Assembly: GCA_002269645.1 (NCBI GenBank) | Contig: NIVC01002826.1 | Span: 1 to 64,000 of the forward strand | DNA from: Macrostomum lignano | Taxonomy: Eukaryota | Reading direction: 5' to 3' | DNA length: 64,000 bases | Part shown: piece after piece, positions 1-53,489 of the stretch | Layout: every line of letters begins with the position of its first letter | Numbering within the stretch: position 1 is the first letter of the stretch | Notes under the pieces: model-generated | What the model was told of the DNA's origin: nothing | Databases searched by the model: none | The model's input: the letters and a program-made list of their open reading frames with translations, nothing else | Translations under genes and position numbers: made by a program

Positions 1-3000
1 ATTACTAAAGCAAGCCTATCTTAATTGATTTCTTTCCTCGCAGATTCTGAAGTCAGCACGCCAGCGACATGCCTAAGAGACAAGAATGCGCTTTAACGAT
101 CAGCAGCGAGCATTCTGATCTCGCCGCTGCATCCGTCATTTGGTTCACTTGCTGCTCACAAGCCGCAGCAGCAGCAGCCGCTATCCGTGCAGGCAGTCAG
201 TCTCTTTGTGAATTTTCTGGTGGATCTGAAGAAAACCCGTCCGGCACAGGATTAAAGAGAAAGAGACGATCTGTTTTGGGTGAGTATTATCTGCTGTAGA
301 AGTATTGTACACCAGAGTACTTGTGTTACTTGGTAGAGCACAATTCAAAAGCAATGCAACAATCTCAGTGGCATTGTTGGGACACAAGCTACAAACGCAT
401 TGAATAGTAAACACAGCCCAGCCTAGCTCAAGGCTAGTAATTTGTTGGGCATTTATTGGGACATTGCAGCCAGGCTATTTTTTGAACAGCATTTGTTGGG
501 TCGCACTTATTGGGACAATACTGATTCTAATCGCGACTACTTCTGAGTTCTGACTTTTCAAAACAGACCCAGCATTAGTTGAACACGTTCTATTAAAGGG
601 TTCCTTTATAGCCTATTAATGATTACTAAAGCAAGCCTATCTTAATTGATTTCTTTTCCTCGCAGATTCTGAAGTCAGCCACGCCAGCGACATGCCTAAG
701 AGACAAGAATGCGCTTTAACGATCAGCAGCGAGCATTCTGATCTCGCCGCTGCATCCGTCATTTGGTTCACTTGCTGCTCACAAGCCGCAGCAGCAGCAG
801 CCGCTATCCGTGCAGGCAGTCAGTCTCTTTGTGAATTTTCTGGTGGATCTGAAGAAAACCCGTCCGGCACAGGATTAAAGAGAAAGAGACGATCTGTTTT
901 GGGTGAGTATTATCTGCTGTAGAAGTATTGTACACCAGAGTACTTGTGTTACTTGGTAGAGCACAATTCAAAAGCAATGCAACAATCTCAGTGGCATTGT
1001 TGGGACACAAGCTACAAACGCATTGAATAGTAAACACAGCCCAGCCTAGCTCAAGGCTAGTAATTTGTTGGGCATTTATTGGGACATTGCAGCCAGGCCT
1101 ATTTTTTGAACAGCATTTGTTGGGTCGCACTTATTGGGACAATACTGATTCTAATCGCGACTACTTCTGAGTTCTGACTTTTCAAAACAGACCCAGCATT
1201 AGTTGAACACGTTCTATTAAAGGGTTCCTTTATAGCCTATTAATGATTACTAAAGCAAGCCTATCTTAATTGATTTCTTTTCCTCGCAGATTCTGAAGTC
1301 AGCCACGCCAGCGACATGCCTAAGAGACAAGAATGCGCTTTAACGATCAGCAGCGAGCATTCTGATCTCGCCGCTGCATCCGTCATTTGGTTCACTTGCT
1401 GCTCACAAGCCGCAGCAGCAGCAGCCGCTATCCGTGCAGGCAGTCAGTCTCTTTGTGAATTTTCTGGTGGATCTGAAGAAAACCCGTCCGGCACAGGATT
1501 AAAGAGAAAGAGACGATCTGTTTTGGGTGAGTATTATCTGCTGTAGAAGTATTGTACACCAGAGTACTTGTGTTACTTGGTAGAGCACAATTCAAAAGCA
1601 ATGCAACAATCTCAGTGGCATTGTTGGGACACAAGCTACAAACGCATTGAATAGTAAACACAGCCCAGCCTAGCTCAAGGCTAGTAATTTGTTGGGCATT
1701 TATTGGGACATTGCAGCCAGGCCTATTTTTTGAACAGCATTTGTTGGGTCGCACTTATTGGGACAATACTGATTCTAATCGCGACTACTTCTGAGTTCTG
1801 ACTTTTCAAAACAGACCCAGCATTAGTTGAACACGTTCTATTAAAGGGTTCCTTTATAGCCTATTAATGATTACTAAAGCAAGCCTATCTTAATTGATTT
1901 CTTTTCCTCGCAGATTCTGAAGTCAGCCACGCCAGCGACATGCCTAAGAGACAAGAATGCGCTTTAACGATCAGCAGCGAGCATTCTGATCTCGCCGCTG
2001 CATCCGTCATTTGGTTCACTTGCTGCTCACAAGCCGCAGCAGCAGCAGCCGCTATCCGTGCAGGCAGTCAGTCTATTTGTGAATTTTCTGGTGGATCTGA
2101 AGAAAACCCGTCCGGCACAGGATTAAAGAGAAAGAGACGATCTGTTTTGGGTGAGTATTATCTGCTGTAGAAGTATTGTACACCAGAGTACTTGTGTTAC
2201 TTGGTAGAGCACAATTCAAAAGCAATGCAACAATCTCAGTGGCATTGTTGGGACACAAGCTACAAACGCATTGAATAGTAAACACAGCCCAGCCTAGCTC
2301 AAGGCTAGTAATTTGTTGGGCATTTATTGGGACATTGCAGCCAGGCCTATTTTTTGAACAGCATTTGTTGGGTCGCACTTATTGGGACAATACTGATTCT
2401 AATCGCGACTACTTCTGAGTTCTGACTTTTCAAAACAGACCCAGCATTAGTTGAACACGTTCTATTAAAGGGTTCCTTTATAGCCTATTAATGATTACTA
2501 AAGCAAGCCTATCTTAATTGATTTCTTTTCCTCGCAGATTCTGAAGTCAGCCACGCCAGCGACATGCCTAAGAGACAAGAATGCGCTTTAACGATCAGCA
2601 GCGAGCATTCTGATCTCGCCGCTGCATCCGTCATTTGGTTCACTTGCTGCTCACAAGCCGCAGCAGCAGCAGCCGCTATCCGTGCAGGCAGTCAGTCTCT
2701 TTGTGAATTTTCTGGTGGATCTGAAGAAAACCCGTCCGGCACAGGATTAAAGAGAAAGAGACGATCTGTTTTGGGTGAGTATTATCTGCTGTAGAAGTAT
2801 TGTACACCAGAGTACTTGTGTTACTTGGTAGAGCACAATTCAAAAGCAATGCAACAATCTCAGTGGCATTGTTGGGACACAAGCTACAAACGCATTGAAT
2901 AGTAAACACAGCCCAGCCTAGCTCAAGGCTAGTAATTTGTTGGGCATTTATTGGGACATTGCAGCCAGGCCTATTTTTTGAACAGCATTTGTTGGGTCGC

Positions 3001-3905
3001 ACTTATTGGGACAATACTGATTCTAATCGCGACTACTTCTGAGTTCTGACTTTTCAAAACAGACCCAGCATTAGTTGAACACGTTCTATTAAAGGGTTCC
3101 TTTATAGCCTATTAATGATTACTAAAGCAAGCCTATCTTAATTGATTTCTTTTCCTCGCAGATTCTGAAGTCAGCCACGCCAGCGACATGCCTAAGAGAC
3201 AAGAATGCGCTTTAACGATCAGCAGCGAGCATTCTGATCTCGCCGCTGCATCCGTCATTTGGTTCACTTGCTGCTCACAAGCCGCAGCAGCAGCAGCCGC
3301 TATCCGTGCAGGCAGTCAGTCTCTTTGTGAATTTTCTGGTGGATCTGAAGAAAACCCGTCCGGCACAGGATTAAAGAGAAAGAGACGATCTGTTTTGGGT
3401 GAGTATTATCTGCTGTAGAAGTATTGTACACCAGAGTACTTGTGTTACTTGGTAGAGCACAATTCAAAAGCAATGCAACAATCTCAGTGGCATTGTTGGG
3501 ACACAAGCTACAAACGCATTGAATAGTAAACACAGCCCAGCCTAGCTCAAGGCTAGTAATTTGTTGGGCATTTATTGGGACATTGCAGCCAGGCCTATTT
3601 TTTGAACAGCATTTGTTGGGTCGCACTTATTGGGACAATACTGATTCTAATCGCGACTACTTCTGAGTTCTGACTTTTCAAAACAGACCCAGCATTAGTT
3701 GAACACGTTCTATTAAAGGGTTCCTTTATAGCCTATTAATGATTACTAAAGCAAGCCTATCTTAATTGATTTCTTTTCCTCGCAGATTCTGAAGTCAGCC
3801 ACGCCAGCGACATGCCTAAGAGACAAGAATGCGCTTTAACGATCAGCAGCGAGCATTCTGATCTCGCCGCTGCATCCGTCATTTGGTTCACTTGCTGCTC
3901 ACAAG

Positions 3906-3941
<36 letters not shown>

Positions 3942-6900
3942 CTATCCGTGCAGGCAGTCAGTCTATTTGTGAATTTTCTGGTGGATCTGAAGAAAACCCG
4001 TCCGGCACAGGATTAAAGAGAAAGAGACGATCTGTTTTGGGTGAGTATTATCTGCTGTAGAAGTATTGTACACCAGAGTACTTGTGTTACTTGGTAGAGC
4101 ACAATTCAAAAGCAATGCAACAATCTCAGTGGCATTGTTGGGACACAAGCTACAAACGCATTGAATAGTAAACACAGCCCAGCCTAGCTCAAGGCTAGTA
4201 ATTTGTTGGGCATTTATTGGGACATTGCAGCCAGGCCTATTTTTTGAACAGCATTTGTTGGGTCGCACTTATTGGGACAATACTGATTCTAATCGCGACT
4301 ACTTCTGAGTTCTGACTTTTCAAAACAGACCCAGCATTAGTTGAACACGTTCTATTAAAGGGTTCCTTTATAGCCTATTAATGATTACTAAAGCAAGCCT
4401 ATCTTAATTGATTTCTTTTCCTCGCAGATTCTGAAGTCAGCCACGCCAGCGACATGCCTAAGAGACAAGAATGCGCTTTAACGATCAGCAGCGAGCATTC
4501 TGATCTCGCCGCTGCATCCGTCATTTGGTTCACTTGCTGCTCACAAGCCGCAGCAGCAGCAGCCGCTATCCGTGCAGGCAGTCAGTCTATTTGTGAATTT
4601 TCTGGTGGATCTGAAGAAAACCCGTCCGGCACAGGATTAAAGAGAAAGAGACGATCTGTTTTGGGTGAGTATTATCTGCTGTAGAAGTATTGTACACCAG
4701 AGTACTTGTGTTACTTGGTAGAGCACAATTCAAAAGCAATGCAACAATCTCAGTGGCATTGTTGGGACACAAGCTACAAACGCATTGAATAGTAAACACA
4801 GCCCAGCCTAGCTCAAGGCTAGTAATTTGTTGGGCATTTATTGGGACATTGCAGCCAGGCCTATTTTTTGAACAGCATTTGTTGGGTCGCACTTATTGGG
4901 ACAATACTGATTCTAATCGCGACTACTTCTGAGTTCTGACTTTTCAAAACAGACCCAGCATTAGTTGAACACGTTCTATTAAAGGGTTCCTTTATAGCCT
5001 ATTAATGATTACTAAAGCAAGCCTATCTTAATTGATTTCTTTTCCTCGCAGATTCTGAAGTCAGCCACGCCAGCGACATGCCTAAGAGACAAGAATGCGC
5101 TTTAACGATCAGCAGCGAGCATTCTGATCTCGCCGCTGCATCCGTCATTTGGTTCACTTGCTGCTCACAAGCCGCAGCAGCAGCAGCCGCTATCCGTGCA
5201 GGCAGTCAGTCTTTTGTGAATTTTCTGGTGGATCTGAAGAAAACCCGTCCGGCACAGGATTAAAGAGAAAGAGACGATCTGTTTTGGGTGAGTATTATCT
5301 GCTGTAGAAGTATTGTACACCAGAGTACTTGTGTTACTTGGTAGAGCACAATTCAAAAGCAATGCAACAATCTCAGTGGCATTGTTGGGACACAAGCTAC
5401 AAACGCATTGAATAGTAAACACAGCCCAGCCTAGCTCAAGGCTAGTAATTTGTTGGGCATTTATTGGGACATTGCAGCCAGGCCTATTTTTTGAACAGCA
5501 TTTGTTGGGTCGCACTTATTGGGACAATACTGATTCTAATCGCGACTACTTCTGAGTTCTGACTTTTCAAAACAGACCCAGCATTAGTTGAACACGTTCT
5601 ATTAAAGGGTTCCTTTATAGCCTATTAATGATTACTAAAGCAAGCCTATCTTAATTGATTTCTTTTCCTCGCAGATTCTGAAGTCAGCCACGCCAGCGAC
5701 ATGCCTAAGAGACAAGAATGCGCTTTAACGATCAGCAGCGAGCATTCTGATCTCGCCGCTGCATCCGTCATTTGGTTCACTTGCTGCTCACAAGCCGCAG
5801 CAGCAGCAGCCGCTATCCGTGCAGGCAGTCAGTCTATTTGTGAATTTTCTGGTGGATCTGAAGAAAACCCGTCCGGCACAGGATTAAAGAGAAAGAGACG
5901 ATCTGTTTTGGGTGAGTATTATCTGCTGTAGAAGTATTGTACACCAGAGTACTTGTGTTACTTGGTAGAGCACAATTCAAAAGCAATGCAACAATCTCAG
6001 TGGCATTGTTGGGACACAAGCTACAAACGCATTGAATAGTAAACACAGCCCAGCCTAGCTCAAGGCTAGTAATTTGTTGGGCATTTATTGGGACATTGCA
6101 GCCAGGCCTATTTTTTGAACAGCATTTGTTGGGTCGCACTTATTGGGACAATACTGATTCTAATCGCGACTACTTCTGAGTTCTGACTTTTCAAAACAGA
6201 CCCAGCATTAGTTGAACACGTTCTATTAAAGGGTTCCTTTATAGCCTATTAATGATTACTAAAGCAAGCCTATCTTAATTGATTTCTTTTCCTCGCAGAT
6301 TCTGAAGTCAGCCACGCCAGCGACATGCCTAAGAGACAAGAATGCGCTTTAACGATCAGCAGCGAGCATTCTGATCTCGCCGCTGCATCCGTCATTTGGT
6401 TCACTTGCTGCTCACAAGCCGCAGCAGCAGCAGCCGCTATCCGTGCAGGCAGTCAGTCTCTTTGTGAATTTTCTGGTGGATCTGAAGAAAACCCGTCCGG
6501 CACAGGATTAAAGAGAAAGAGACGATCTGTTTTGGGTGAGTATTATCTGCTGTAGAAGTATTGTACACCAGAGTACTTGTGTTACTTGGTAGAGCACAAT
6601 TCAAAAGCAATGCAACAATCTCAGTGGCATTGTTGGGACACAAGCTACAAACGCATTGAATAGTAAACACAGCCCAGCCTAGCTCAAGGCTAGTAATTTG
6701 TTGGGCATTTATTGGGACATTGCAGCCAGGCCTATTTTTTGAACAGCATTTGTTGGGTCGCACTTATTGGGACAATACTGATTCTAATCGCGACTACTTC
6801 TGAGTTCTGACTTTTCAAAACAGACCCAGCATTAGTTGAACACGTTCTATTAAAGGGTTCCTTTATAGCCTATTAATGATTACTAAAGCAAGCCTATCTT

Positions 6901-9900
6901 AATTGATTTCTTTTCCTCGCAGATTCTGAAGTCAGCCACGCCAGCGACATGCCTAAGAGACAAGAATGCGCTTTAACGATCAGCAGCGAGCATTCTGATC
7001 TCGCCGCTGCATCCGTCATTTGGTTCACTTGCTGCTCACAAGCCGCAGCAGCAGCAGCCGCTATCCGTGCAGGCAGTCAGTCTCTTTGTGAATTTTCTGG
7101 TGGATCTGAAGAAAACCCGTCCGGCACAGGATTAAAGAGAAAGAGACGATCTGTTTTGGGTGAGTATTATCTGCTGTAGAAGTATTGTACACCAGAGTAC
7201 TTGTGTTACTTGGTAGAGCACAATTCAAAAGCAATGCAACAATCTCAGTGGCATTGTTGGGACACAAGCTACAAACGCATTGAATAGTAAACACAGCCCA
7301 GCCTAGCTCAAGGCTAGTAATTTGTTGGGCATTTATTGGGACATTGCAGCCAGGCCTATTTTTTGAACAGCATTTGTTGGGTCGCACTTATTGGGACAAT
7401 ACTGATTCTAATCGCGACTACTTCTGAGTTCTGACTTTTCAAAACAGACCCAGCATTAGTTGAACACGTTCTATTAAAGGGTTCCTTTATAGCCTATTAA
7501 TGATTACTAAAGCAAGCCTATCTTAATTGATTTCTTTTCCTCGCAGATTCTGAAGTCAGCCACGCCAGCGACATGCCTAAGAGACAAGAATGCGCTTTAA
7601 CGATCAGCAGCGAGCATTCTGATCTCGCCGCTGCATCCGTCATTTGGTTCACTTGCTGCTCACAAGCCGCAGCAGCAGCAGCCGCTATCCGTGCAGGCAG
7701 TCAGTCTCTTTGTGAATTTTCTGGTGGATCTGAAGAAAACCCGTCCGGCACAGGATTAAAGAGAAAGAGACGATCTGTTTTGGGTGAGTATTATCTGCTG
7801 TAGAAGTATTGTACACCAGAGTACTTGTGTTACTTGGTAGAGCACAATTCAAAAGCAATGCAACAATCTCAGTGGCATTGTTGGGACACAAGCTACAAAC
7901 GCATTGAATAGTAAACACAGCCCAGCCTAGCTCAAGGCTAGTAATTTGTTGGGCATTTATTGGGACATTGCAGCCAGGCCTATTTTTTGAACAGCATTTG
8001 TTGGGTCGCACTTATTGGGACAATACTGATTCTAATCGCGACTACTTCTGAGTTCTGACTTTTCAAAACAGACCCAGCATTAGTTGAACACGTTCTATTA
8101 AAGGGTTCCTTTATAGCCTATTAATGATTACTAAAGCAAGCCTATCTTAATTGATTTCTTTTCCTCGCAGATTCTGAAGTCAGCCACGCCAGCGACATGC
8201 CTAAGAGACAAGAATGCGCTTTAACGATCAGCAGCGAGCATTCTGATCTCGCCGCTGCATCCGTCATTTGGTTCACTTGCTGCTCACAAGCCGCAGCAGC
8301 AGCAGCCGCTATCCGTGCAGGCAGTCAGTCTCTTTGTGAATTTTCTGGTGGATCTGAAGAAAACCCGTCCGGCACAGGATTAAAGAGAAAGAGACGATCT
8401 GTTTTGGGTGAGTATTATCTGCTGTAGAAGTATTGTACACCAGAGTACTTGTGTTACTTGGTAGAGCACAATTCAAAAGCAATGCAACAATCTCAGTGGC
8501 ATTGTTGGGACACAAGCTACAAACGCATTGAATAGTAAACACAGCCCAGCCTAGCTCAAGGCTAGTAATTTGTTGGGCATTTATTGGGACATTGCAGCCA
8601 GGCCTATTTTTTGAACAGCATTTGTTGGGTCGCACTTATTGGGACAATACTGATTCTAATCGCGACTACTTCTGAGTTCTGACTTTTCAAAACAGACCCA
8701 GCATTAGTTGAACACGTTCTATTAAAGGGTTCCTTTATAGCCTATTAATGATTACTAAAGCAAGCCTATCTTAATTGATTTCTTTTCCTCGCAGATTCTG
8801 AAGTCAGCCACGCCAGCGACATGCCTAAGAGACAAGAATGCGCTTTAACGATCAGCAGCGAGCATTCTGATCTCGCCGCTGCATCCGTCATTTGGTTCAC
8901 TTGCTGCTCACAAGCCGCAGCAGCAGCAGCCGCTATCCGTGCAGGCAGTCAGTCTCTTTGTGAATTTTCTGGTGGATCTGAAGAAAACCCGTCCGGCACA
9001 GGATTAAAGAGAAAGAGACGATCTGTTTTGGGTGAGTATTATCTGCTGTAGAAGTATTGTACACCAGAGTACTTGTGTTACTTGGTAGAGCACAATTCAA
9101 AAGCAATGCAACAATCTCAGTGGCATTGTTGGGACACAAGCTACAAACGCATTGAATAGTAAACACAGCCCAGCCTAGCTCAAGGCTAGTAATTTGTTGG
9201 GCATTTATTGGGACATTGCAGCCAGGCCTATTTTTTGAACAGCATTTGTTGGGTCGCACTTATTGGGACAATACTGATTCTAATCGCGACTACTTCTGAG
9301 TTCTGACTTTTCAAAACAGACCCAGCATTAGTTGAACACGTTCTATTAAAGGGTTCCTTTATAGCCTATTAATGATTACTAAAGCAAGCCTATCTTAATT
9401 GATTTCTTTTCCTCGCAGATTCTGAAGTCAGCCACGCCAGCGACATGCCTAAGAGACAAGAATGCGCTTTAACGATCAGCAGCGAGCATTCTGATCTCGC
9501 CGCTGCATCCGTCATTTGGTTCACTTGCTGCTCACAAGCCGCAGCAGCAGCAGCCGCTATCCGTGCAGGCAGTCAGTCTCTTTGTGAATTTTCTGGTGGA
9601 TCTGAAGAAAACCCGTCCGGCACAGGATTAAAGAGAAAGAGACGATCTGTTTTGGGTGAGTATTATCTGCTGTAGAAGTATTGTACACCAGAGTACTTGT
9701 GTTACTTGGTAGAGCACAATTCAAAAGCAATGCAACAATCTCAGTGGCATTGTTGGGACACAAGCTACAAACGCATTGAATAGTAAACACAGCCCAGCCT
9801 AGCTCAAGGCTAGTAATTTGTTGGGCATTTATTGGGACATTGCAGCCAGGCCTATTTTTTGAACAGCATTTGTTGGGTCGCACTTATTGGGACAATACTG

Positions 9901-12900
9901 ATTCTAATCGCGACTACTTCTGAGTTCTGACTTTTCAAAACAGACCCAGCATTAGTTGAACACGTTCTATTAAAGGGTTCCTTTATAGCCTATTAATGAT
10001 TACTAAAGCAAGCCTATCTTAATTGATTTCTTTTCCTCGCAGATTCTGAAGTCAGCCACGCCAGCGACATGCCTAAGAGACAAGAATGCGCTTTAACGAT
10101 CAGCAGCGAGCATTCTGATCTCGCCGCTGCATCCGTCATTTGGTTCACTTGCTGCTCACAAGCCGCAGCAGCAGCAGCCGCTATCCGTGCAGGCAGTCAG
10201 TCTCTTTGTGAATTTTCTGGTGGATCTGAAGAAAACCCGTCCGGCACAGGATTAAAGAGAAAGAGACGATCTGTTTTGGGTGAGTATTATCTGCTGTAGA
10301 AGTATTGTACACCAGAGTACTTGTGTTACTTGGTAGAGCACAATTCAAAAGCAATGCAACAATCTCAGTGGCATTGTTGGGACACAAGCTACAAACGCAT
10401 TGAATAGTAAACACAGCCCAGCCTAGCTCAAGGCTAGTAATTTGTTGGGCATTTATTGGGACATTGCAGCCAGGCCTATTTTTTGAACAGCATTTGTTGG
10501 GTCGCACTTATTGGGACAATACTGATTCTAATCGCGACTACTTCTGAGTTCTGACTTTTCAAAACAGACCCAGCATTAGTTGAACACGTTCTATTAAAGG
10601 GTTCCTTTATAGCCTATTAATGATTACTAAAGCAAGCCTATCTTAATTGATTTCTTTTCCTCGCAGATTCTGAAGTCAGCCACGCCAGCGACATGCCTAA
10701 GAGACAAGAATGCGCTTTAACGATCAGCAGCGAGCATTCTGATCTCGCCGCTGCATCCGTCATTTGGTTCACTTGCTGCTCACAAGCCGCAGCAGCAGCA
10801 GCCGCTATCCGTGCAGGCAGTCAGTCTCTTTGTGAATTTTCTGGTGGATCTGAAGAAAACCCGTCCGGCACAGGATTAAAGAGAAAGAGACGATCTGTTT
10901 TGGGTGAGTATTATCTGCTGTAGAAGTATTGTACACCAGAGTACTTGTGTTACTTGGTAGAGCACAATTCAAAAGCAATGCAACAATCTCAGTGGCATTG
11001 TTGGGACACAAGCTACAAACGCATTGAATAGTAAACACAGCCCAGCCTAGCTCAAGGCTAGTAATTTGTTGGGCATTTATTGGGACATTGCAGCCAGGCC
11101 TATTTTTTGAACAGCATTTGTTGGGTCGCACTTATTGGGACAATACTGATTCTAATCGCGACTACTTCTGAGTTCTGACTTTTCAAAACAGACCCAGCAT
11201 TAGTTGAACACGTTCTATTAAAGGGTTCCTTTATAGCCTATTAATGATTACTAAAGCAAGCCTATCTTAATTGATTTCTTTTCCTCGCAGATTCTGAAGT
11301 CAGCCACGCCAGCGACATGCCTAAGAGACAAGAATGCGCTTTAACGATCAGCAGCGAGCATTCTGATCTCGCCGCTGCATCCGTCATTTGGTTCACTTGC
11401 TGCTCACAAGCCGCAGCAGCAGCAGCCGCTATCCGTGCAGGCAGTCAGTCTCTTTGTGAATTTTCTGGTGGATCTGAAGAAAACCCGTCCGGCACAGGAT
11501 TAAAGAGAAAGAGACGATCTGTTTTGGGTGAGTATTATCTGCTGTAGAAGTATTGTACACCAGAGTACTTGTGTTACTTGGTAGAGCACAATTCAAAAGC
11601 AATGCAACAATCTCAGTGGCATTGTTGGGACACAAGCTACAAACGCATTGAATAGTAAACACAGCCCAGCCTAGCTCAAGGCTAGTAATTTGTTGGGCAT
11701 TTATTGGGACATTGCAGCCAGGCCTATTTTTTGAACAGCATTTGTTGGGTCGCACTTATTGGGACAATACTGATTCTAATCGCGACTACTTCTGAGTTCT
11801 GACTTTTCAAAACAGACCCAGCATTAGTTGAACACGTTCTATTAAAGGGTTCCTTTATAGCCTATTAATGATTACTAAAGCAAGCCTATCTTAATTGATT
11901 TCTTTTCCTCGCAGATTCTGAAGTCAGCCACGCCAGCGACATGCCTAAGAGACAAGAATGCGCTTTAACGATCAGCAGCGAGCATTCTGATCTCGCCGCT
12001 GCATCCGTCATTTGGTTCACTTGCTGCTCACAAGCCGCAGCAGCAGCAGCCGCTATCCGTGCAGGCAGTCAGTCTCTTTGTGAATTTTCTGGTGGATCTG
12101 AAGAAAACCCGTCCGGCACAGGATTAAAGAGAAAGAGACGATCTGTTTTGGGTGAGTATTATCTGCTGTAGAAGTATTGTACACCAGAGTACTTGTGTTA
12201 CTTGGTAGAGCACAATTCAAAAGCAATGCAACAATCTCAGTGGCATTGTTGGGACACAAGCTACAAACGCATTGAATAGTAAACACAGCCCAGCCTAGCT
12301 CAAGGCTAGTAATTTGTTGGGCATTTATTGGGACATTGCAGCCAGGCCTATTTTTTGAACAGCATTTGTTGGGTCGCACTTATTGGGACAATACTGATTC
12401 TAATCGCGACTACTTCTGAGTTCTGACTTTTCAAAACAGACCCAGCATTAGTTGAACACGTTCTATTAAAGGGTTCCTTTATAGCCTATTAATGATTACT
12501 AAAGCAAGCCTATCTTAATTGATTTCTTTTCCTCGCAGATTCTGAAGTCAGCCACGCCAGCGACATGCCTAAGAGACAAGAATGCGCTTTAACGATCAGC
12601 AGCGAGCATTCTGATCTCGCCGCTGCATCCGTCATTTGGTTCACTTGCTGCTCACAAGCCGCAGCAGCAGCAGCCGCTATCCGTGCAGGCAGTCAGTCTC
12701 TTTGTGAATTTTCTGGTGGATCTGAAGAAAACCCGTCCGGCACAGGATTAAAGAGAAAGAGACGATCTGTTTTGGGTGAGTATTATCTGCTGTAGAAGTA
12801 TTGTACACCAGAGTACTTGTGTTACTTGGTAGAGCACAATTCAAAAGCAATGCAACAATCTCAGTGGCATTGTTGGGACACAAGCTACAAACGCATTGAA

Positions 12901-14524
12901 TAGTAAACACAGCCCAGCCTAGCTCAAGGCTAGTAATTTGTTGGGCATTTATTGGGACATTGCAGCCAGGCCTATTTTTTGAACAGCATTTGTTGGGTCG
13001 CACTTATTGGGACAATACTGATTCTAATCGCGACTACTTCTGAGTTCTGACTTTTCAAAACAGACCCAGCATTAGTTGAACACGTTCTATTAAAGGGTTC
13101 CTTTATAGCCTATTAATGATTACTAAAGCAAGCCTATCTTAATTGATTTCTTTTCCTCGCAGATTCTGAAGTCAGCCACGCCAGCGACATGCCTAAGAGA
13201 CAAGAATGCGCTTTAACGATCAGCAGCGAGCATTCTGATCTCGCCGCTGCATCCGTCATTTGGTTCACTTGCTGCTCACAAGCCGCAGCAGCAGCAGCCG
13301 CTATCCGTGCAGGCAGTCAGTCTCTTTGTGAATTTTCTGGTGGATCTGAAGAAAACCCGTCCGGCACAGGATTAAAGAGAAAGAGACGATCTGTTTTGGG
13401 TGAGTATTATCTGCTGTAGAAGTATTGTACACCAGAGTACTTGTGTTACTTGGTAGAGCACAATTCAAAAGCAATGCAACAATCTCAGTGGCATTGTTGG
13501 GACACAAGCTACAAACGCATTGAATAGTAAACACAGCCCAGCCTAGCTCAAGGCTAGTAATTTGTTGGGCATTTATTGGGACATTGCAGCCAGGCCTATT
13601 TTTTGAACAGCATTTGTTGGGTCGCACTTATTGGGACAATACTGATTCTAATCGCGACTACTTCTGAGTTCTGACTTTTCAAAACAGACCCAGCATTAGT
13701 TGAACACGTTCTATTAAAGGGTTCCTTTATAGCCTATTAATGATTACTAAAGCAAGCCTATCTTAATTGATTTCTTTTCCTCGCAGATTCTGAAGTCAGC
13801 CACGCCAGCGACATGCCTAAGAGACAAGAATGCGCTTTAACGATCAGCAGCGAGCATTCTGATCTCGCCGCTGCATCCGTCATTTGGTTCACTTGCTGCT
13901 CACAAGCCGCAGCAGCAGCAGCCGCTATCCGTGCAGGCAGTCAGTCTCTTTGTGAATTTTCTGGTGGATCTGAAGAAAACCCGTCCGGCACAGGATTAAA
14001 GAGAAAGAGACGATCTGTTTTGGGTGAGTATTATCTGCTGTAGAAGTATTGTACACCAGAGTACTTGTGTTACTTGGTAGAGCACAATTCAAAAGCAATG
14101 CAACAATCTCAGTGGCATTGTTGGGACACAAGCTACAAACGCATTGAATAGTAAACACAGCCCAGCCTAGCTCAAGGCTAGTAATTTGTTGGGCATTTAT
14201 TGGGACATTGCAGCCAGGCCTATTTTTTGAACAGCATTTGTTGGGTCGCACTTATTGGGACAATACTGATTCTAATCGCGACTACTTCTGAGTTCTGACT
14301 TTTCAAAACAGACCCAGCATTAGTTGAACACGTTCTATTAAAGGGTTCCTTTATAGCCTATTAATGATTACTAAAGCAAGCCTATCTTAATTGATTTCTT
14401 TTCCTCGCAGATTCTGAAGTCAGCCACGCCAGCGACATGCCTAAGAGACAAGAATGCGCTTTAACGATCAGCAGCGAGCATTCTGATCTCGCCGCTGCAT
14501 CCGTCATTTGGTTCACTTGCTGCT

Positions 14525-14573
<49 letters not shown>

Positions 14574-17500
14574 TATCCGTGCAGGCAGTCAGTCTATTTG
14601 TGAATTTTCTGGTGGATCTGAAGAAAACCCGTCCGGCACAGGATTAAAGAGAAAGAGACGATCTGTTTTGGGTGAGTATTATCTGCTGTAGAAGTATTGT
14701 ACACCAGAGTACTTGTGTTACTTGGTAGAGCACAATTCAAAAGCAATGCAACAATCTCAGTGGCATTGTTGGGACACAAGCTACAAACGCATTGAATAGT
14801 AAACACAGCCCAGCCTAGCTCAAGGCTAGTAATTTGTTGGGCATTTATTGGGACATTGCAGCCAGGCCTATTTTTTGAACAGCATTTGTTGGGTCGCACT
14901 TATTGGGACAATACTGATTCTAATCGCGACTACTTCTGAGTTCTGACTTTTCAAAACAGACCCAGCATTAGTTGAACACGTTCTATTAAAGGGTTCCTTT
15001 ATAGCCTATTAATGATTACTAAAGCAAGCCTATCTTAATTGATTTCTTTTCCTCGCAGATTCTGAAGTCAGCCACGCCAGCGACATGCCTAAGAGACAAG
15101 AATGCGCTTTAACGATCAGCAGCGAGCATTCTGATCTCGCCGCTGCATCCGTCATTTGGTTCACTTGCTGCTCACAAGCCGCAGCAGCAGCAGCCGCTAT
15201 CCGTGCAGGCAGTCAGTCTCTTTGTGAATTTTCTGGTGGATCTGAAGAAAACCCGTCCGGCACAGGATTAAAGAGAAAGAGACGATCTGTTTTGGGTGAG
15301 TATTATCTGCTGTAGAAGTATTGTACACCAGAGTACTTGTGTTACTTGGTAGAGCACAATTCAAAAGCAATGCAACAATCTCAGTGGCATTGTTGGGACA
15401 CAAGCTACAAACGCATTGAATAGTAAACACAGCCCAGCCTAGCTCAAGGCTAGTAATTTGTTGGGCATTTATTGGGACATTGCAGCCAGGCCTATTTTTT
15501 GAACAGCATTTGTTGGGTCGCACTTATTGGGACAATACTGATTCTAATCGCGACTACTTCTGAGTTCTGACTTTTCAAAACAGACCCAGCATTAGTTGAA
15601 CACGTTCTATTAAAGGGTTCCTTTATAGCCTATTAATGATTACTAAAGCAAGCCTATCTTAATTGATTTCTTTTCCTCGCAGATTCTGAAGTCAGCCACG
15701 CCAGCGACATGCCTAAGAGACAAGAATGCGCTTTAACGATCAGCAGCGAGCATTCTGATCTCGCCGCTGCATCCGTCATTTGGTTCACTTGCTGCTCACA
15801 AGCCGCAGCAGCAGCAGCCGCTATCCGTGCAGGCAGTCAGTCTCTTTGTGAATTTTCTGGTGGATCTGAAGAAAACCCGTCCGGCACAGGATTAAAGAGA
15901 AAGAGACGATCTGTTTTGGGTGAGTATTATCTGCTGTAGAAGTATTGTACACCAGAGTACTTGTGTTACTTGGTAGAGCACAATTCAAAAGCAATGCAAC
16001 AATCTCAGTGGCATTGTTGGGACACAAGCTACAAACGCATTGAATAGTAAACACAGCCCAGCCTAGCTCAAGGCTAGTAATTTGTTGGGCATTTATTGGG
16101 ACATTGCAGCCAGGCCTATTTTTTGAACAGCATTTGTTGGGTCGCACTTATTGGGACAATACTGATTCTAATCGCGACTACTTCTGAGTTCTGACTTTTC
16201 AAAACAGACCCAGCATTAGTTGAACACGTTCTATTAAAGGGTTCCTTTATAGCCTATTAATGATTACTAAAGCAAGCCTATCTTAATTGATTTCTTTTCC
16301 TCGCAGATTCTGAAGTCAGCCACGCCAGCGACATGCCTAAGAGACAAGAATGCGCTTTAACGATCAGCAGCGAGCATTCTGATCTCGCCGCTGCATCCGT
16401 CATTTGGTTCACTTGCTGCTCACAAGCCGCAGCAGCAGCAGCCGCTATCCGTGCAGGCAGTCAGTCTCTTTGTGAATTTTCTGGTGGATCTGAAGAAAAC
16501 CCGTCCGGCACAGGATTAAAGAGAAAGAGACGATCTGTTTTGGGTGAGTATTATCTGCTGTAGAAGTATTGTACACCAGAGTACTTGTGTTACTTGGTAG
16601 AGCACAATTGAAAAGCAATGCAACAATCTCAGTGGCATTGTTGGGACACAAGCTACAAACGCATTGAATAGTAAACACAGCCCAGCCTAGCTCAAGGCTA
16701 GTAATTTGTTGGGCATTTATTGGGACATTGCAGCCAGGCCTATTTTTTGAACAGCATTTGTTGGGTCGCACTTATTGGGACAATACTGATTCTAATCGCG
16801 ACTACTTCTGAGTTCTGACTTTTCAAAACAGACCCAGCATTAGTTGAACACGTTCTATTAAAGGGTTCCTTTATAGCCTATTAATGATTACTAAAGCAAG
16901 CCTATCTTAATTGATTTCTTTTCCTCGCAGATTCTGAAGTCAGCCACGCCAGCGACATGCCTAAGAGACAAGAATGCGCTTTAACGATCAGCAGCGAGCA
17001 TTCTGATCTCGCCGCTGCATCCGTCATTTGGTTCACTTGCTGCTCACAAGCCGCAGCAGCAGCAGCCGCTATCCGTGCAGGCAGTCAGTCTCTTTGTGAA
17101 TTTTCTGGTGGATCTGAAGAAAACCCGTCCGGCACAGGATTAAAGAGAAAGAGACGATCTGTTTTGGGTGAGTATTATCTGCTGTAGAAGTATTGTACAC
17201 CAGAGTACTTGTGTTACTTGGTAGAGCACAATTGAAAAGCAATGCAACAATCTCAGTGGCATTGTTGGGACACAAGCTACAAACGCATTGAATAGTAAAC
17301 ACAGCCCAGCCTAGCTCAAGGCTAGTAATTTGTTGGGCATTTATTGGGACATTGCAGCCAGGCCTATTTTTTGAACAGCATTTGTTGGGTCGCACTTATT
17401 GGGACAATACTGATTCTAATCGCGACTACTTCTGAGTTCTGACTTTTCAAAACAGACCCAGCATTAGTTGAACACGTTCTATTAAAGGGTTCCTTTATAG

Positions 17501-17676
17501 CCTATTAATGATTACTAATGCAAGCCTATCTTAATTGATTTCTTTTCCTCGCAGATTCTGAAGTCAGCAACGCCAGCGACATGCCTAAGAGACAAGAATG
17601 CGCTTTAACGATCAGCAGCGAGCATTCTGATCTCGCCGCTGCATCCGTCATTTGGTTCACTTGCTGCTCACAAGCC

Positions 17677-17718
<42 letters not shown>

Positions 17719-17742
17719 GCTATCTGTGCAGCAGTCAGTTAA
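1..17742. repeat. 624-bp tandem macrosatellite-like array, 28 full units plus one divergent terminal unit; starts before the window
   Basis: The same ATGCCTAAGAGA recurs at 69, 692, 1316 ... 16957, 17581 with a 624-bp period. Exceptions: 623 after 69 and after 5078, 642 after 3812, 648 after 14437. Units are almost identical. Confidence 0.99.
44..17742 (+). CDS. Putative 3' portion of a repeat-protein gene: about 28 identical 79-codon phase-1 exons plus a terminal exon (17555-17742)
   Basis: Each unit has the acceptor ttcttttcctcgcag| (e.g. exon 666-902) and the donor G|gtgagt. The exon is 237 nt, open in only one frame, and phase 1 at both ends (junction G+AT=Asp). The terminal unit reads into TAA at 17740-17742, with AATAAA at 17863. 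Two units (exon at 44-279 and the unit with ATG 5078) carry 1-nt deletions. No homology recognised. Confidence 0.45.
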
Positions 17743-17945
17743 TTCATGAGTTTTTTGGCGGAGCTGGTTATTTTTTTAATTTTCTGAATCGAGAAGCCGA
17801 TTAACTGCTGTGTGCTTCACTGGAATATTATTTAGAGGACGCATTTTTTGCAGTCTGTTTCTAATAAAATCCGGTGCAATGACCGCGGTAGAGCTCTAGC
17901 ATTTGCTTTTTATAGTATTTGTGTATATTCTTTTTCAAGCTATGC

Positions 17946-18196
17946 TGGAATTGTTGGGACAGCCCTATCCACACTGGCTATGGTGGAATTGTTGGGACAG
18001 CCCTATCCACACTGGCTATGGTTGAATTGTTGGGACAGCCCTATCCACACTGGCTATGGTGGAATTGTTGGGACAGCCCTATCCACACTGGCTATGGTTG
18101 AATTGTTGGGACAGCCCTATCCACACTGGCTATGGTGGAATTGTTGGGACAGCCCTATCCACACTGGCTATGGTGAAATTGTTGGGACAGCCCCAT
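17946..18196. repeat. 38-bp minisatellite (GAATTGTTGGGACAGCCCTATCCACACTGGCTATGGT-like), about 6.5 copies
   Basis: Direct reading; unit starts at 18061 and 18099. Confidence 0.95.
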
Positions 18197-19163
18197 ACTA
18201 TAGTGTGTGCTGGCTTCTGCTATAGTGTGGTTCATTTCCGCATCCTTTTACGTAGCATTCTGTGGGTCCGAATAGCTGACATGTACCTTTTGAGTAATTC
18301 TAGTGATTGTGTCATAATCAATAAAGTACATTTTTATGAACAGTGGAGTTTCGCTACAGAATTGTTTTTTCCCAGTGGCACTAAATGTAGCAAATTTTGT
18401 TTATTCAGATCGTAAAATTTTTTTGATATGTGTCAATGTCGTTTGTCTTCGATAACCTTAAAGTCCCTTGCCATTTACCATCCTGTCTTCTATAATCTAT
18501 GATCGCTGAAATTATCTGGTGAAATTTGACGCGCTGATATTATTGCCTTAGTGGAATTCAGCAAGACACCAGGGTTTTTTAATTCTGTTTTAGACAAGTA
18601 TACATGTACAATCTGTTGTGAGTTCAATGCACCTCGAAAAATGCTTTCCAACTGTTTTCAGTAAGCCAAAAGCATGTTGTCAATAAAAATCTATTTGGTG
18701 GGTTGAAAATTGCCTGTGTGGGGACGTGTGTGTGTGTGATTTTTCGTGTGTCGGAGCAGTCCCAATATGTGCAAGTTTTTGCACACTTGGCCAATAAGTG
18801 CCTCGTGCACGTTTGTGTGTGTGTGTGTGTGTTGCCAATAGAAATGGCCAGGTGAATCCTAAGGTTGCGCCCAAGCATGACTATAAATATAGGTGCTACT
18901 GGGCAACCAGTCATATTGTTGAATATAATTGTATGTTTTTAAGTAGTAGCTGACTAAAAACTTAAGAGGACTTGTAAATTATTTTCTTCATACCCCCTTC
19001 TAGTTTTCTAGTGATATCCCCACAGTTTTAACCATAGACAGTTGCTAAAAGACAGTTGTTGTTTCACTTTCTTACACACCTTGGCACTATTTCAATTTCA
19101 TGCTTTTCTAAATGCTACAAAGGTTTCCACAACATACTATTATCATTTTTTGTCATTTAAAGT

Positions 19164-19606
19164 GAGAGCACAAACTTTACCAGCTAGAAAATTGCTAGCC
19201 AAGAAAGTTGCCAGCTAGAAAGTTGCCAGCCAAGAACTTTGCCAGCTGGAAAGTTGCTAGCTGAGAACTTTGCAAGCCGGAAAGTTGCTAGCTGGGAAAG
19301 TTGCCAGTCAAGAACTTTGCTAGCTAGAAAGGTTGCTAGCCAGAAAGTTGCTAGCCGGAAAGTTGCCAGCCAGAAGGTTGCCAACTAGCAACTTTCCAGC
19401 TAGCAACCTTCTGGCTGGCAGAAACCTTCCTAGCTGGCAACTTTCCAGCTAGCAACCTTCCAGCTGGCAAAGTTCTTGGCTGGCAACTTTCTTGTCTAGC
19501 AACTTTTTGGCTGGCAACTTTCTTGGCTAGCAACTTTCTGGCTGGCAACTTTTTTGGCTAGCAACTTTCCGGCTAGCAACTTTCTAGCTGGCAAAGTTTG
19601 TAGACC
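19164..19606. mobile_element. Foldback/MULE-like non-autonomous palindromic element with internally repetitive arms
   Basis: The left arm is built of CCAGCTAGAAAGTTG-like modules and the right arm of their reverse complements. The ends ACAAACTTTACCAGCTAGAAA and TTTCTAGCTGGCAAAGTTTGT differ by 1 mismatch. A 10-bp direct repeat CATTTAAAGT lies at 19154-19163 and 19607-19616. Confidence 0.65.
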
Positions 19607-21794
19607 CATTTAAAGTTAGTATTGTTTGTGTTCAAATGAAAAATTAATTTAATGAATGAAAGAGGAAAATTGCTTGATATCTTGGCATATATGTTGCCTT
19701 CCAAACTATAAGGCCTAAGCTATCCTTATTGTATAATAAGGCCTACTTTTGTTATATTGTTATCAACATATAATTGATCTCAACTAGGCTATAGTCCATT
19801 ATTTTCTAATAGTTTTATAGGATGTATATTAGAATGGCAACAATAAAATGGCTACATTATCTGCATATAACCATTTAGTATTTTTCTGGTTGTTATGCTA
19901 TGATATAAATGAAATTTTTGGGAATCCTCTCCACGAAATAGAAATTGTCTCTGTGAAACTGAACACTATCAAAATCCTCTTTATAAAACTGGACTCAATC
20001 AAAATTTTCTCTGTCAAACAGAACTCAACTCTCAGGATTCATTGGTTTTAAGGATTAGGATTAGAGCTACACACAGCAGCATGTAAAAAGGCGCGGCTAG
20101 AAATTGAACCAATTAAATCAATTGATTGCGTAACCAATTTCTTAGTCAGTCAGCATTAGTCTCAGTTAAAGTTAACAAAAAGATTGTGCAATATAAATCA
20201 ACCCTCTAATATACAGTGACTGACCCTCTTCCAATATGCAGTGGTAATTAGAAATTGAACCCACAAACTATTAGGGGGTCAGTCAAACCCCCACTGAATA
20301 CCCAAAATGAGTACAATCTTTGCAAAAGTTAAAAGTATAGAAATCATTTTTCAAATGCTGTGCTCTTTCTTTTCATATTTAAAGCAAACAACTTATATCC
20401 ATGAACTCAGTGTTGCAAGATATTTCTAGCAATATAAGTCTCTCAAAGTCTAATACTTAAAGAACAGTTAGCATTTGAAATTTCCCAAGTCCCCAACTGC
20501 TTGCTACATTGAGACAGAGGCTCGCAAGTTTATTCATTGAATTTCACTGCCTAGCAAGACACAAGGCTGCAAATTGAAAGGTGCCAATAATAAAACCAAT
20601 TGAATCTTGGCACAATCCTTGCTATCTGTTTACATTGTACAATTGCTATGTACACTCAGCCCAACCCTCTCCCCATTCTGGGGAAATAATTAAATTTAAC
20701 TCAACCCCCAACATGTGGGTGAGGGGTTTGTTTGCATTGATCAAATAACATGTGCACCCCCCTCAATACATTTTGATAAATTTTGTATCAAATTCATTAT
20801 TTGATACCAAATAGATAATAACAAAAATATAAAGAAATAGAAATCCTAAAAATAAAAAACTAAAGGGTCTAAAGGTTATATCATGGTAATAAAAACAAAA
20901 GTTTGTAGAATAGGATCTTTATATTAATTTGTGTTTTACTATGCCTATAATTAGAGTAGTCCTTAAGGATATATATTTGGCTACAAAAGTGAGGACAAAT
21001 GTTGAGTCCAACAAATTGAGCAAAACTATTTTAGTTTCCTATTTGGACACTATCCCAATTAATATCAAAGAGACAGTCATTGGAACAAACAGGCAATTAG
21101 ACAAAGTCATTAGAAGATATTGCAGTTATAATTCCTAGAAGAAAGCAGCAGACTTTGGTGCAAAATTAATTGTAAATCAACTATTCATTAGCACATAAAA
21201 CCTAAAGTTGGCACCCTTCTTATTTTTGTTTTACAACATATTAATAAATTGTCCATTTAGGATATTGTATAATAAAAGTAAATATAAGGATTGTGCTCTA
21301 GTCAGCTACAAGTAGGATTATTGCAATAGGCTATATGCCTATATATATTTCAATTCTTACTATTCTCCATTGGGTATTGTATAACAAAATTGGCATAAGT
21401 AATCAATTGGGATATAGGTATTATTAGACAAAAGAATGCCCCAAATTATATACAATTAAAATTTTACTTTCTTTATTTTTGTTTATGGCCCTTTTGTTAT
21501 GCTAGCCATTCTGGCTCTATGGCTATTTAATTATGTGGTCATTTTGGCCCTGTGGCCATTTGGTTGTTTGGCCATTCTACATGTGGCTTTTTGACAATAC
21601 CCTAGTTTTTTAAGATAATATTTAACAGTATATACTTTTTGTATATTTATTATATTATGTAAATCAAACCAATTTAATCTCCTTGGTTTATTTTTAATTG
21701 TACCTTTAGGCTTCAGATAGCCTATTTAGAGTCTATACTCAGTCTTACCATTAATATAATTTGATTTACTTGAGTAGTCTGATTTTCGTTAGGC

Positions 21795-25755: not shown

Positions 25756-25865
25756 CCTCCGGTTCAAATACCCCAGACGATTCGGTTTAGCAGCACTGAA
25801 ACTCAGGCATAAACTGCAACCATTGCAGAGGTCACCGCTAGGCGCTCACCTGTGCCGCAGCAATT

Positions 25866-28401: not shown

Positions 28402-28438
28402 AAAGTCGTAATCACAGCCCAAACATGCAGTTTCAGAA

Positions 28439-29125
28439 ATGACATCCAAGTGCATCTCTTTGAAAGCCCTGACAGCCCTGGCGGCATTCGCCTGCCTTCT
28501 GCCTGTCAGCCGCGGCCACACCATCGAAGGCGTCATCGAGCAGCCAATGGACGCCGATGCGGACTTCCTAGCTAAGACTCGAATCACCGTAGACTCTGGC
28601 AACTACCTGGGCTTCATTCGTGCTAATCGAACTTTTATAGTGCAGCACGTGCCCAGCGGATCCTTTGTAGTTGAAGCCATCCACCCAAACTACCTGTTCG
28701 AGCCGATGCGAGTCGATGTCGCCAGTAGCGGCAAGATCCGCGCCCGCAAGCTGAACTTCCTGCAGCCGGCGCTGGTTAAAAAGCTGACCTATCCGCTGCG
28801 CTTTGTCAGCCTAGGCCGGGCCGCGTACTTTCAGCAGCGGGAACAGCTGAGAACGCTTGACCTGCTCATGAACCCGTCTGTGCTGATCATGGTGGTGCCC
28901 ATGCTAATCCTGCTAGTTATGCCTAAGCTGATGAACACCCAGGATCCCGAGGTGCGCAAGGAGATGCAACAGCAAATGAACTTTTTTAGTAACAAGCAGA
29001 ACATGCCGGACGTTGCTGAGACTCTCAGCAATTGGTTTGGCGGCGGCGGCAGCAGCGGCAGCAGGCGATCCGGTAGCGCGTTGAAGGACGCGAAGCGACC
29101 TGGTGTGAAGAAGCGAGCCGCCTGA
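28439..29125 (+). CDS. EMC7: ER membrane protein complex subunit 7, 228 aa, single coding exon
   Basis: It has a signal peptide, GFIRANRTFIVQHVPSGSFVVEAIHPNYLFEPMRVDV, YFQQREQ, the TM segment NPSVLIMVVPMLILLVMPKLM and a basic C-terminus, all typical of EMC7. Confidence 0.92.
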   Translation: MTSKCISLKALTALAAFACLLPVSRGHTIEGVIEQPMDADADFLAKTRITVDSGNYLGFIRANRTFIVQHVPSGSFVVEAIHPNYLFEPMRVDVASSGKIRARKLNFLQPALVKKLTYPLRFVSLGRAAYFQQREQLRTLDLLMNPSVLIMVVPMLILLVMPKLMNTQDPEVRKEMQQQMNFFSNKQNMPDVAETLSNWFGGGGSSGSRRSGSALKDAKRPGVKKRAA

Positions 29126-42600: not shown

Positions 42601-42892
42601 GCCGTACATTCACCGCGGCAGCACTGAGCAGAGCGCCTATCGATGCCGGCTGATCAGCGTCTGCGTCTGCTCGCTTATCTGGCTCGGCGCCTGTCTACTG
42701 TTTGGCGCCATTTTCTACTTGGCGCCAGTGAGCTCCTGCAGCTGGTGCGTGTATTTCAACTGCGCGCCGAAATGGTTCGAGTCGAATTTTAGGGAGAAAA
42801 CTTTTGTCGATTATTGCGGCAACGCCGATCTTAATCGTCTGGAGCCTACTAGGTGCATTGAACGGTTCAATACTGACATGGGGCACTTGTGA
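36613..42892 (+). CDS. RHBDF: Inactive rhomboid (iRhom/RHBDF family), about 962 aa, 4 exons (36613-38202, 38526-38985, 40209-40564, 42410-42892)
   Basis: It has a long low-complexity cytosolic N-terminus, HRPFFTYWITLVH, a Cys-rich iRhom homology domain (IGPRMSDLIRVGAKYSLCMR; GCCIHNDGSACYQS; CGQDPRTC; RPCCVGIKGEC; CSQVNC), QFYRLFTSLFLHAG, GPTSAQ and PWFDNFAN. All junctions are GT-AG and in frame. Confidence 0.93.
39045..40180. repeat. 36-bp minisatellite (CTCTGGAGAAATCCCAAATAATCCTCACTCTGAGCA) filling iRhom intron 2
   Basis: Direct reading; 12-aa periodic ORFs. Confidence 0.95.
40600..42400. repeat. 23-bp minisatellite (AAACTACCCAGACAATCAGCCTT alternating with AAACTACCCTGAGAGTCAGTCTG) filling iRhom intron 3
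   Basis: Direct reading; the two variants alternate as a 46-bp dimer in the 3' half, and a short (AATTAAGGC)n insert lies near 40928-40968. Confidence 0.95.
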
Positions 42893-53413: not shown

Positions 53414-53489
53414 ATAGTAAGGCCTAACGGAGGATAAAAGTAAGACAGAATAGGACGAGACTTCACATGACAAGTACCATACAGGACGC

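Follow-up and report, generated by a model that had tools for sequence, protein, structure and literature searches.

A tandem array of in-frame exon-intron units as the probable interior of a dispersed, non-autonomous element of Macrostomum lignano

Transposons with internal tandem-repeat arrays that seed satellites are known, among them Tetris of Drosophila virilis, DINE-TR1, the foldback elements and the bivalve pearl/CvA elements. A second known kind consists of host genes with variable numbers of tandem exon-intron repeats, which include human LPA (kringle IV-2), DMBT1 (SRCR) and NBPF (Olduvai) and the spider Flag silk gene, whose introns are more alike than its exons. The subject of this report is a 624-bp tandem array of Macrostomum lignano, found at the start of a stretch of 64,000 nucleotides (contig NIVC01002826.1 of assembly GCA_002269645.1, positions 1 to 64,000), which is referred to as the window and as contig C2826. 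The array is probably (with a probability of roughly 0.62) the expandable internal region of a non-autonomous element bounded by terminal inverted repeats (TIRs), its long open reading frame (ORF) being probably incidental. Both known kinds would come together in a transposon of which each satellite unit is an in-frame exon-intron module that is spliced.

The element is similar to Tetris, DINE-TR1, foldback and pearl in that it is non-autonomous, has terminal repeats and a variable internal array, carries terminal-repeat motifs within its units, and is present as many young copies dispersed in gene-rich DNA. Unlike in those elements, its units are splice-competent, each made of an exon and an intron with a symmetric open frame, and the element possesses its own leader, terminal exon and poly(A) signal, inserts into (GT)n microsatellites and has no assignable autonomous relative or superfamily. 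With LPA, DMBT1, NBPF and Flag it shares the exon + intron unit, the symmetric phases and the homogenised units, and as in Flag the intron is better conserved than the exon; unit number, however, varies between copies of the element, while in those genes it varies between alleles. The latter are single-locus genes with proven proteins, whereas the M. lignano element exists as about 42 TIR-bounded copies, some with whole arrays bearing nonsense codons, and its frame shows no clear sign of selection.

The genome searched comprised 764 Mb in 5269 contigs. The 624-bp unit gave 134 scored matches on ten other contigs, with 96-100% identity. In all loci the array starts at the same base (unit position 86, within the exon) and ends with the same truncated unit, and the copies have in common two unique parts, 1.8 kb upstream, called the leader, and 1.27 kb downstream. 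Outside these shared parts the flanks are unrelated, and homology among the copies stops at the same bases on both sides, which for the copy in the window places the right boundary at 18832. The 413 bp at the 3' end are present in at least 40 copies with 96-100% identity, and the 426 bp at the 5' end likewise in at least 40 copies, with 113 candidates. The TIRs are imperfect, 38 bp long and match at 29 of 38 positions (GTGCATTAGGCATTTCTTGGGACAAGCGTG... against the reverse complement GTGCACGAGGCACTTATTGGCCAAGTGTGC...); the element termini can also be written GTGCACGAGGCA. The degenerate 20-mer GTGCAYNAGGCAYTTNTTGG occurs 82 times in the genome, and its reversed-pattern control does not occur at all. 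With mismatches allowed, 42 ends of the 5' type and 42 of the 3' type are found, facing each other as an inverted pair wherever both are on one contig, and about 42 element copies are present in the assembled genome.

Twenty-seven of the copies are complete, measuring 5.6-20.8 kb with about 4 to 28 units; the copy in the window, with at least 29 units, is among the largest and is truncated by the contig start. The layout of a copy is as follows: (GT)n-TTT, the 5' TIR, the 1.8-kb leader, a variable number of units each made of a 237-nt exon and a 387-nt intron, the terminal exon with its stop and AATAAA, the 38-bp minisatellite, the 3' TIR and GTTT-(GT)n. The initial annotation, made from the window alone, took the array for the 3' end of one giant gene. 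This proposal is not upheld, since the array recurs with identical boundaries in about 42 copies whose flanks are unrelated, and homeologous empty sites lack it. Its expectation that length would vary by copy number is borne out by the range of 4 to at least 29 units among the copies. The copy in the window adjoins ordinary genes.

Empty sites were identified for two insertions. The joined flanks of the copy on contig C3919 match contig C1449 contiguously, and the empty site is (TG)15, as compared with (GT)10-TTT-[11-kb element]-GTTT-(GT)5.5 at the filled site. The second insertion is divided between two contigs, C3645 holding its 5' half and C2045 its 3' half, and is absent from C1461, which has (GT)13, and from C33, which has a long (GT)n; a flank identity of 92-94% suggests homeologous copies of a neopolyploid genome. 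Every copy examined sits in (GT)n, filled sites reading (GT)10TTT[element]GTTT(GT)5-10 and empty sites (TG)13-15. Because the insertions lie inside (GT)n, a target-site duplication is not readable. A relaxed TIR search revealed, beyond the array-bearing copies, only ends of subfamily D (described below) and two ends designated 'E' (C985 and C390). The E locus on C985 shares about 2 kb of the 5' part (69%), has no array and is a 5'-only relic with a single ORF of at least 100 amino acids (113 amino acids). No Pfam domain was found in the ORFs of the element, the 5' leader included. The element is thus a non-autonomous, unclassified TIR element; it has the tested properties of a TIR element with the exception of a readable target duplication and an autonomous partner.

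In the window the array consists of 28 full units of about 624 bp followed by a terminal exon; the contig start cuts it within an intron, and the true count, including the terminal exon, is at least 29. The anchor CGCAGATTCTGAAG occurs 29 times from position 39 to 17550 (within 1-17868 of the window) with a spacing of 624 bp, the exceptions being 622, 623, 642 and 648, of which the last two result from longer CAG runs. The array is not listed by Tandem Repeats Finder, because the longest period of that program was 500, less than 624 bp. Each unit contains ...tttcttttcctcgCAG, the 237-nt segment and GTGAGT, and then 387 nt, with the donor TTTTGG/GTGAGT (a slash marks a splice boundary here and below) in 28 units. 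The exon + intron build proposed initially, with a 237-nt segment, a GTGAGT donor and a CAG acceptor, is confirmed. The exon is 237 nt long in 24 of these, 255 and 261 nt in two with an expanded CAG run and 236 nt in another two, and its GC content is 51.5% against 39.8% for the intron.

The consensus exon has a length divisible by three (3n), codon phase 1 at both ends and canonical GTGAGT and CAG sites; the consensus splice motifs of M. lignano are GT[G/A]AG and CAG (PMC8629364). As had been stated, the consensus is open in exactly one frame, the five other frames containing stops. The open frame alone is weak evidence, because 7% of shuffles of 237 nt with the composition of the exon have an open forward frame. 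That each unit encodes the quoted peptide is correct for 21 of the 28 units, which match it exactly, and not for three with an L>I replacement nor for the two 236-nt exons, which are frameshifted. In exon 7 (3786-4040) the register of the CAG run differs, so that poly-Ser (11 Ser) replaces poly-Ala and the frame stays open. The 29th exon, which starts at 17555, diverges past the CAG run. Its interpretation as a last exon, with a TAA in frame and an AATAAA, agrees with the terminal exon of existing gene models, and its end, AAICAAVS followed by the stop, is common to all copies of subfamily A. A conceptual mRNA of the 29 exons in the window does not yield the single repeat protein of more than 2200 amino acids that had been envisaged; as assembled it contains ORFs of 705 and 1624 amino acids, split because of 1-nt deletions in exons 1 and 9.

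Although no homolog had been recognised initially, proteins with this unit are already in the databases. A HMMER search of the full protein library with one exon translation as the query found nine proteins, of which the eight significant ones are all from M. lignano, and a second database search found 26 M. lignano protein models containing the unit. No homolog outside M. lignano was found in the database searches with the unit peptide. The in-frame junction GTTTTGG/ATTCTGAAG that had been predicted is reproduced in existing models (A0A1I8HGF2; BOX15_Mlig026960g1), and the junction RSVL/(D or A)-SEVS is present in the 26 models, among them P0001, P0011, P0013, P0014 and P0017. The A-type junction in the models reads ...GLKRKRRSVL/DSEVSHASDMPKR..., and units whose exon starts with C give G/CT and ...RSVL/ASEVSN.... 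Three of the models come from the Mlig_3_7 annotation in GenBank, for which RNA-seq with StringTie/TACO and a de novo transcriptome were used (PMC5730564). In P0014 (BOX15_Mlig026960g1) three units precede a B-type terminal exon, P0017 (BOX15_Mlig003618g1) ends in ...AAASVI, which is the TAG site of subfamily C, and P0005 (BOX15_Mlig033615g2, with the entry PAA53853.1) continues into a frameshifted tail. A0A1I8HGF2, from the independent ML2 assembly, has 5.5 units; other annotated matches are A0A1I8JGR2 and A0A1I8GFZ0. The models, named 'uncharacterized/secreted protein', are fragments of 70-442 amino acids with the same units and the same junction.

Because RNA-seq-derived models hold the predicted junction, unit-to-unit splicing is supported by an earlier, independent annotation, the basis being gene models, three of them RNA-seq-derived. 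The transcription unit has thus already been seen by annotators. The UniProt models from the ML2 assembly also use alternative donors, GGCA/GTCAGT (IRAG/N-SEVS) and AACCC/GTCCGG, and an internal acceptor, CAGCAG/CGAGCA, and the alternative sites switch between two frames; they may be real isoforms or choices of the gene predictor. Multi-unit proteins gave only sub-threshold matches in Pfam, no stretch passing alone, and the whole window gave no match in Rfam. An AlphaFold2 model of 2.5 units was uninformative (mean predicted local distance difference test score, pLDDT, of 42). In the text library searched, nothing on tandem repeats, satellites and DNA transposons of M. lignano that describes the element was found, nor was a paper naming the gene ids Mlig033615, Mlig026960 or Mlig003618.

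Classical satellite DNA was considered and rejected: unit numbers range from 4 to at least 29, and all boundaries seen coincide with the same unique element ends. More broadly, it is scarcely credible that the array is a normal satellite that is not transcribed and resembles splice motifs by chance, or that it arose as an artefact of assembly or amplification. The redundancy of the assembly and the position of many arrays at contig ends (C2826, C690, C3156, C192, C4006, C3645 and C2045) would be expected from such an origin. They are outweighed by the 27 complete two-TIR copies with differing unit numbers inside contigs, by the models of up to 5.5 units in the independent ML2 assembly, by the junction in the RNA-seq-derived models and by the existence of empty sites.

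The copies fall into four subfamilies. A, to which the window's copy belongs, has a unit of 624 bp; B has one of 636 bp with four additional Ala and C one of 623 bp, and D shares about 78% identity with A. Subfamilies B, C and D were sampled from pieces of 3-4 kb. At C90:277285-296545 two elements are arranged head to tail about 50 bp apart, a B element with an intact frame followed by a C element with TAG in most units. In subfamily C, TGG is changed to TAG (SVI-stop-FTCC) in nearly every unit. A genome search with the unit peptide returned 834 candidates, of which 150 were scored, and an in-frame TAG is present in at least 40 exons on six contigs (40 of the 150 scored exon matches). Of 132 sampled A, B and C units, 10 have a frameshifted exon (7.6%) and 4 contain a stop. 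Frequent stops and frameshifts in other copies, which the initial annotation itself had named as an observation that would speak against it, are thereby found. Internal D exons at C2189 contain a TAA and a 1-nt deletion. Recurrent (non-singleton) exon variants comprise 7 non-synonymous and 2 synonymous changes, approximately a neutral ratio.

Comparison of A with D gives an identity of 78.7% for the exon and 86.3% for the intron, while the 5' end is 81-82%, the inner leader 69-77% and the last exon with the 3' untranslated region 75% identical; the 38-bp minisatellite, at 95.7%, surpasses all other parts of the element. The exon does not exceed the non-coding parts in conservation, and its own conservation is concentrated at both ends, beside the splice sites. 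From these identities, the exon evolves like the non-coding background and the motif-bearing parts are conserved. A nucleotide (frame-agnostic) alignment of A and D gives a ratio of non-synonymous to synonymous differences (pN/pS) of 0.67 in the ORF frame, the corresponding values for the two remaining frames being 0.76 and 0.90. Indels of +2, -6 and +7 cause A and D to differ in the register in which the central 57 nt of the exon are read, and the positions of cysteines are not conserved between the two. Judging from these sequence comparisons, the reading frame gives no clear sign of being needed, and a functional protein appears unlikely.

The leader does not provide an obvious start for the frame. 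Its predicted exons have two GTAAGT donors and an acceptor, ...tttacaacag/CCAATC, which coincides with the start of P0012; the single open path through the predicted leader ends in a stop in another frame, and upstream ATGs are present. No in-frame start was found in the leader, the first in-frame ATG lying inside a unit. Given this leader path, translation of the long ORF would have to start with the MPKRQEC of the first full unit, and several ATGs would precede it. Database models were matched by the predicted leader ORF (MTWHEK...) only via the frame-1 tail of the unit, and none speaks for or against the leader. Spliced-leader (SL) trans-splicing at the unit acceptor was considered and rejected, since CTCGCAG does not fit the [T/C]TNCAG motif of the species; reading from the ATG of the SL at this acceptor would give a peptide of 18 amino acids.

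The core of the TIR, GCAYTTNTTGGGACA, recurs within the element, always in the orientation of the 5' TIR, four times in each intron and once in each copy of the 38-bp minisatellite. In one element of 10.5 kb the motif is present 56 times in forward orientation, with 4 copies in each unit, 7 in the minisatellite and 1 in the TIR, and the sequences that bear it are the best conserved between A and D. In a D copy on contig C2092 (74909-81057), a 128-bp piece of the intron with TTGGGAC motifs (unit positions 325-454) forms a tandem array of its own, in which more than 20 copies separate one exon from the next and bring the exon-to-exon period to 2909 bp. Unit variants are arranged differently in each copy of the element, and a private variant of the last full unit recurs in five loci. 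The 13 consecutive units of identical pattern in the window point to a local expansion in situ, and the variant patterns fit internal expansion and contraction by unequal exchange after insertion.

A mechanism in keeping with the preferred reading, that of a non-autonomous TIR element with an incidental ORF, may be proposed. Array length would change via unequal exchange between units, and constraint would act on the DNA that bears the motif. Other DNA transposons have subterminal repeats, and by this analogy a transposase supplied in trans probably binds the motif copies, the array being an amplified block of such putative sites. The conserved ends of the exon would keep it spliceable. The long ORF would then be a by-product of a symmetric 3n exon that was recently copied, not a selected protein, and the product would be a spliced, polyadenylated, repetitive RNA with an accidental and often broken ORF.

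Several observations weigh against this reading. It does not account for the retention of splice sites by a non-autonomous DNA element over about 20% divergence. A target-site duplication was not found among the copies examined, all of which lie within (GT)n, and the relaxed TIR search found no transposase or autonomous partner among the matches scored. The 1-nt frameshifts may be PacBio consensus errors in the repeat. At C2092 the 20%-diverged D keeps the ORF, the frame and the 3n length, at this one locus, in a 240-nt exon with 55% amino acid identity to A. The protein-guided A-D alignment gives a ratio of non-synonymous to synonymous substitution rates (dN/dS) of 0.51, a borderline value (chi-square p ~0.05), and the ends of the peptide, SxVSxASDMPKR ... 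GLKRKRRSVL, are conserved. Moreover, three of the models are automatically named 'Secreted protein' by UniProt.

Part of this evidence would fit a genuine protein-coding family carried in a mobile cassette, each copy producing a repeat protein of variable length that starts at MPKRQEC. Such a family is unlikely, though several observations favour it: besides the dN/dS of 0.51 and the conserved N- and C-terminal motifs, its exons are of symmetric phase 1-1 and open in one frame in A, B and the C2092 copy of D, the frame is kept through changes of CAG-run length, and spliced models, some of them UniProt 'Secreted protein' entries, exist. A proprotein convertase could cut the product at KRKRR to yield peptides of about 75 amino acids, or KRKRR could serve as a repeated nuclear localisation signal; candidate unit peptides are AGSQSLCEFSGGSEENPSGTGLK and QECALTISSEHSDLAAASVIWFTCCSQAAAAAAAIR. 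However, units of subfamily C, nearly all with a nonsense codon, are still included in spliced models, as in P0017 with its end at SVI, and frameshifts affect 7.6% of the sampled exons, two of them in the array of the window, in addition to the TAA and the deletion in internal D exons at C2189. Conservation is lower in the exon than in the intron, the signal of selection is not specific to the ORF frame, and cysteine positions differ between A and D. The leader has upstream ATGs and a sole open path that stops in another frame, and the protein has no confident fold, no domain and no homolog outside the species in the searches run. A more elaborate version is a mobile 'accordion gene', in which each insertion would be an independent transcription unit and unequal exchange would tune a KRKRR-punctuated polyprotein of 4 to at least 29 repeats. 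This would be a lineage-specific family born in and spread by a DNA transposon, with the nonsense-bearing subfamily as a decaying branch, and it is quite unlikely.

The element is also similar to the captures of Pack-MULE, Pack-CACTA and Helitron, in which a DNA transposon likewise carries exons and introns, and transcription and splicing yield ORFs that are chimeric or without function. It could accordingly hold a fragment of a host gene or of an ancestral transposase gene, tandemly amplified, with the functional parent elsewhere. The gene-like layout of leader exons, splice sites, stop codon and poly(A) signal would agree with such a capture, and KRKRR resembles nuclear localisation signals such as transposases carry. 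It is nevertheless very unlikely, as all scored matches of the unit peptide (150 of 834 candidates) are in A-D arrays, the 26 database proteins show no parent with other domains and the ORFs of the element have no transposase domain in Pfam. The element thus differs from Pack-type captures in that no parent gene was found among these matches and proteins, and in that the module is tandemly amplified up to at least 29 times. The preferred reading remains that of a non-autonomous TIR element whose array is its expandable interior.

Table 1. Positions of the element and of neighbouring features in the 64,000-nt window
Feature	Position	Strand	Remarks
Tandem array, 28 full units (237-nt exon + 387-nt intron)	1-17554	+	Cut by the contig start within an intron
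Exon 1 of the window, 236 nt	44-279	+	CC>C deletion, frame shifted
Representative exon, 237 nt, phase 1-1	666-902	+	Encodes D/SEVSHASDMPKRQECALTISSEHSDLAAASVIWFTCCSQAAAAAAAIRAGSQSLCEFSGGSEENPSGTGLKRKRRSVL; junction found in gene models
Representative intron	903-1289	+	GTGAGT...polypyrimidine tract...CAG; four forward copies of the TIR-core motif TTNTTGGGNC
Exon 7, 255 nt	3786-4040	+	CAG run expanded
Exon 9, 236 nt	5052-5287	+	Base lost at polymorphic A/C site (unit position 162), frame shifted
13 consecutive units	6299-14410	+	One identical variant pattern
Exon 24, 261 nt	14411-14671	+	CAG run expanded, +8 codons
Terminal exon	17555-17890	+	In-frame TAA 17740-17742, AATAAA 17863-17868
38-bp minisatellite, 6.7 copies	17939-18193	+	Each copy with AATTGTTGGGACA
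3' TIR	18773-18810	-	About 29/38 matches to 5' TIR
GTTT(GT)9, right-hand element end	18811-18832	+	Homology with other copies stops
Formyltransferase gene	25842-27744		N and C domains separated by minisatellites of 22-25 bp (26511-27276)
EMC7	28412-29125		
Minisatellite, 20 bp x 69	29159-30538		
Minisatellite, 52 bp x 53	31181-33949		99% identity
Rhomboid-domain protein	42326-42892		Long ORFs from 36583 may belong to the same gene
Innexin	45587-46594	-	
ASC/DEG-ENaC channel	51599-53413		
Minisatellite, 30 bp x 50	53473-54974		
BTB protein	56012-56767	-	

Directly to the right of the element, 18880-19166 belongs to another high-copy repeat, and the right flank of the window's copy was rejected as an empty-site test for this reason. 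This repeat has 1209 candidate matches genome-wide, the scored copies being 78-93% identical, and a related copy on C1533 has only GTGTGT where the (GT)9 end of the element sits. It is followed at 19157-19614 by a foldback structure, in which 15-nt tandem repeats (CCAGCTAGAAAGTTG) make up two arms, each about 220 nt long, in inverted orientation; 190-nt arms are 71% complementary and 9 nt apart, and the structure may belong to the neighbouring repeat. Between 22299 and 63056, many spacers and introns between ordinary exons are filled by differing minisatellites with units of 5-52 bp and lengths of 0.3-2.8 kb. The M. lignano genome paper gives 15% for simple and tandem repeats. At 61438-63237 a frame of 599 amino acids, composed of 36-bp and 18-bp repeats and mucin-like in being Ser/Pro/Thr-rich, is open; it may or may not be coding, since either strand of this DNA has several open frames.

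The element breaks the Mlig_3_7 assembly at several contig ends. It is also a young, (GT)n-targeting insertion marker that differs between the homeologous copies of the neopolyploid genome. With an incidental ORF, the element would naturally give rise to long, repetitive, spliced RNAs and to spurious "uncharacterized/secreted protein" entries, of which 26 models are already in UniProt/GenBank. Were the ORF in use, a mobile element would clearly have created a new family of repeat proteins and copied it.

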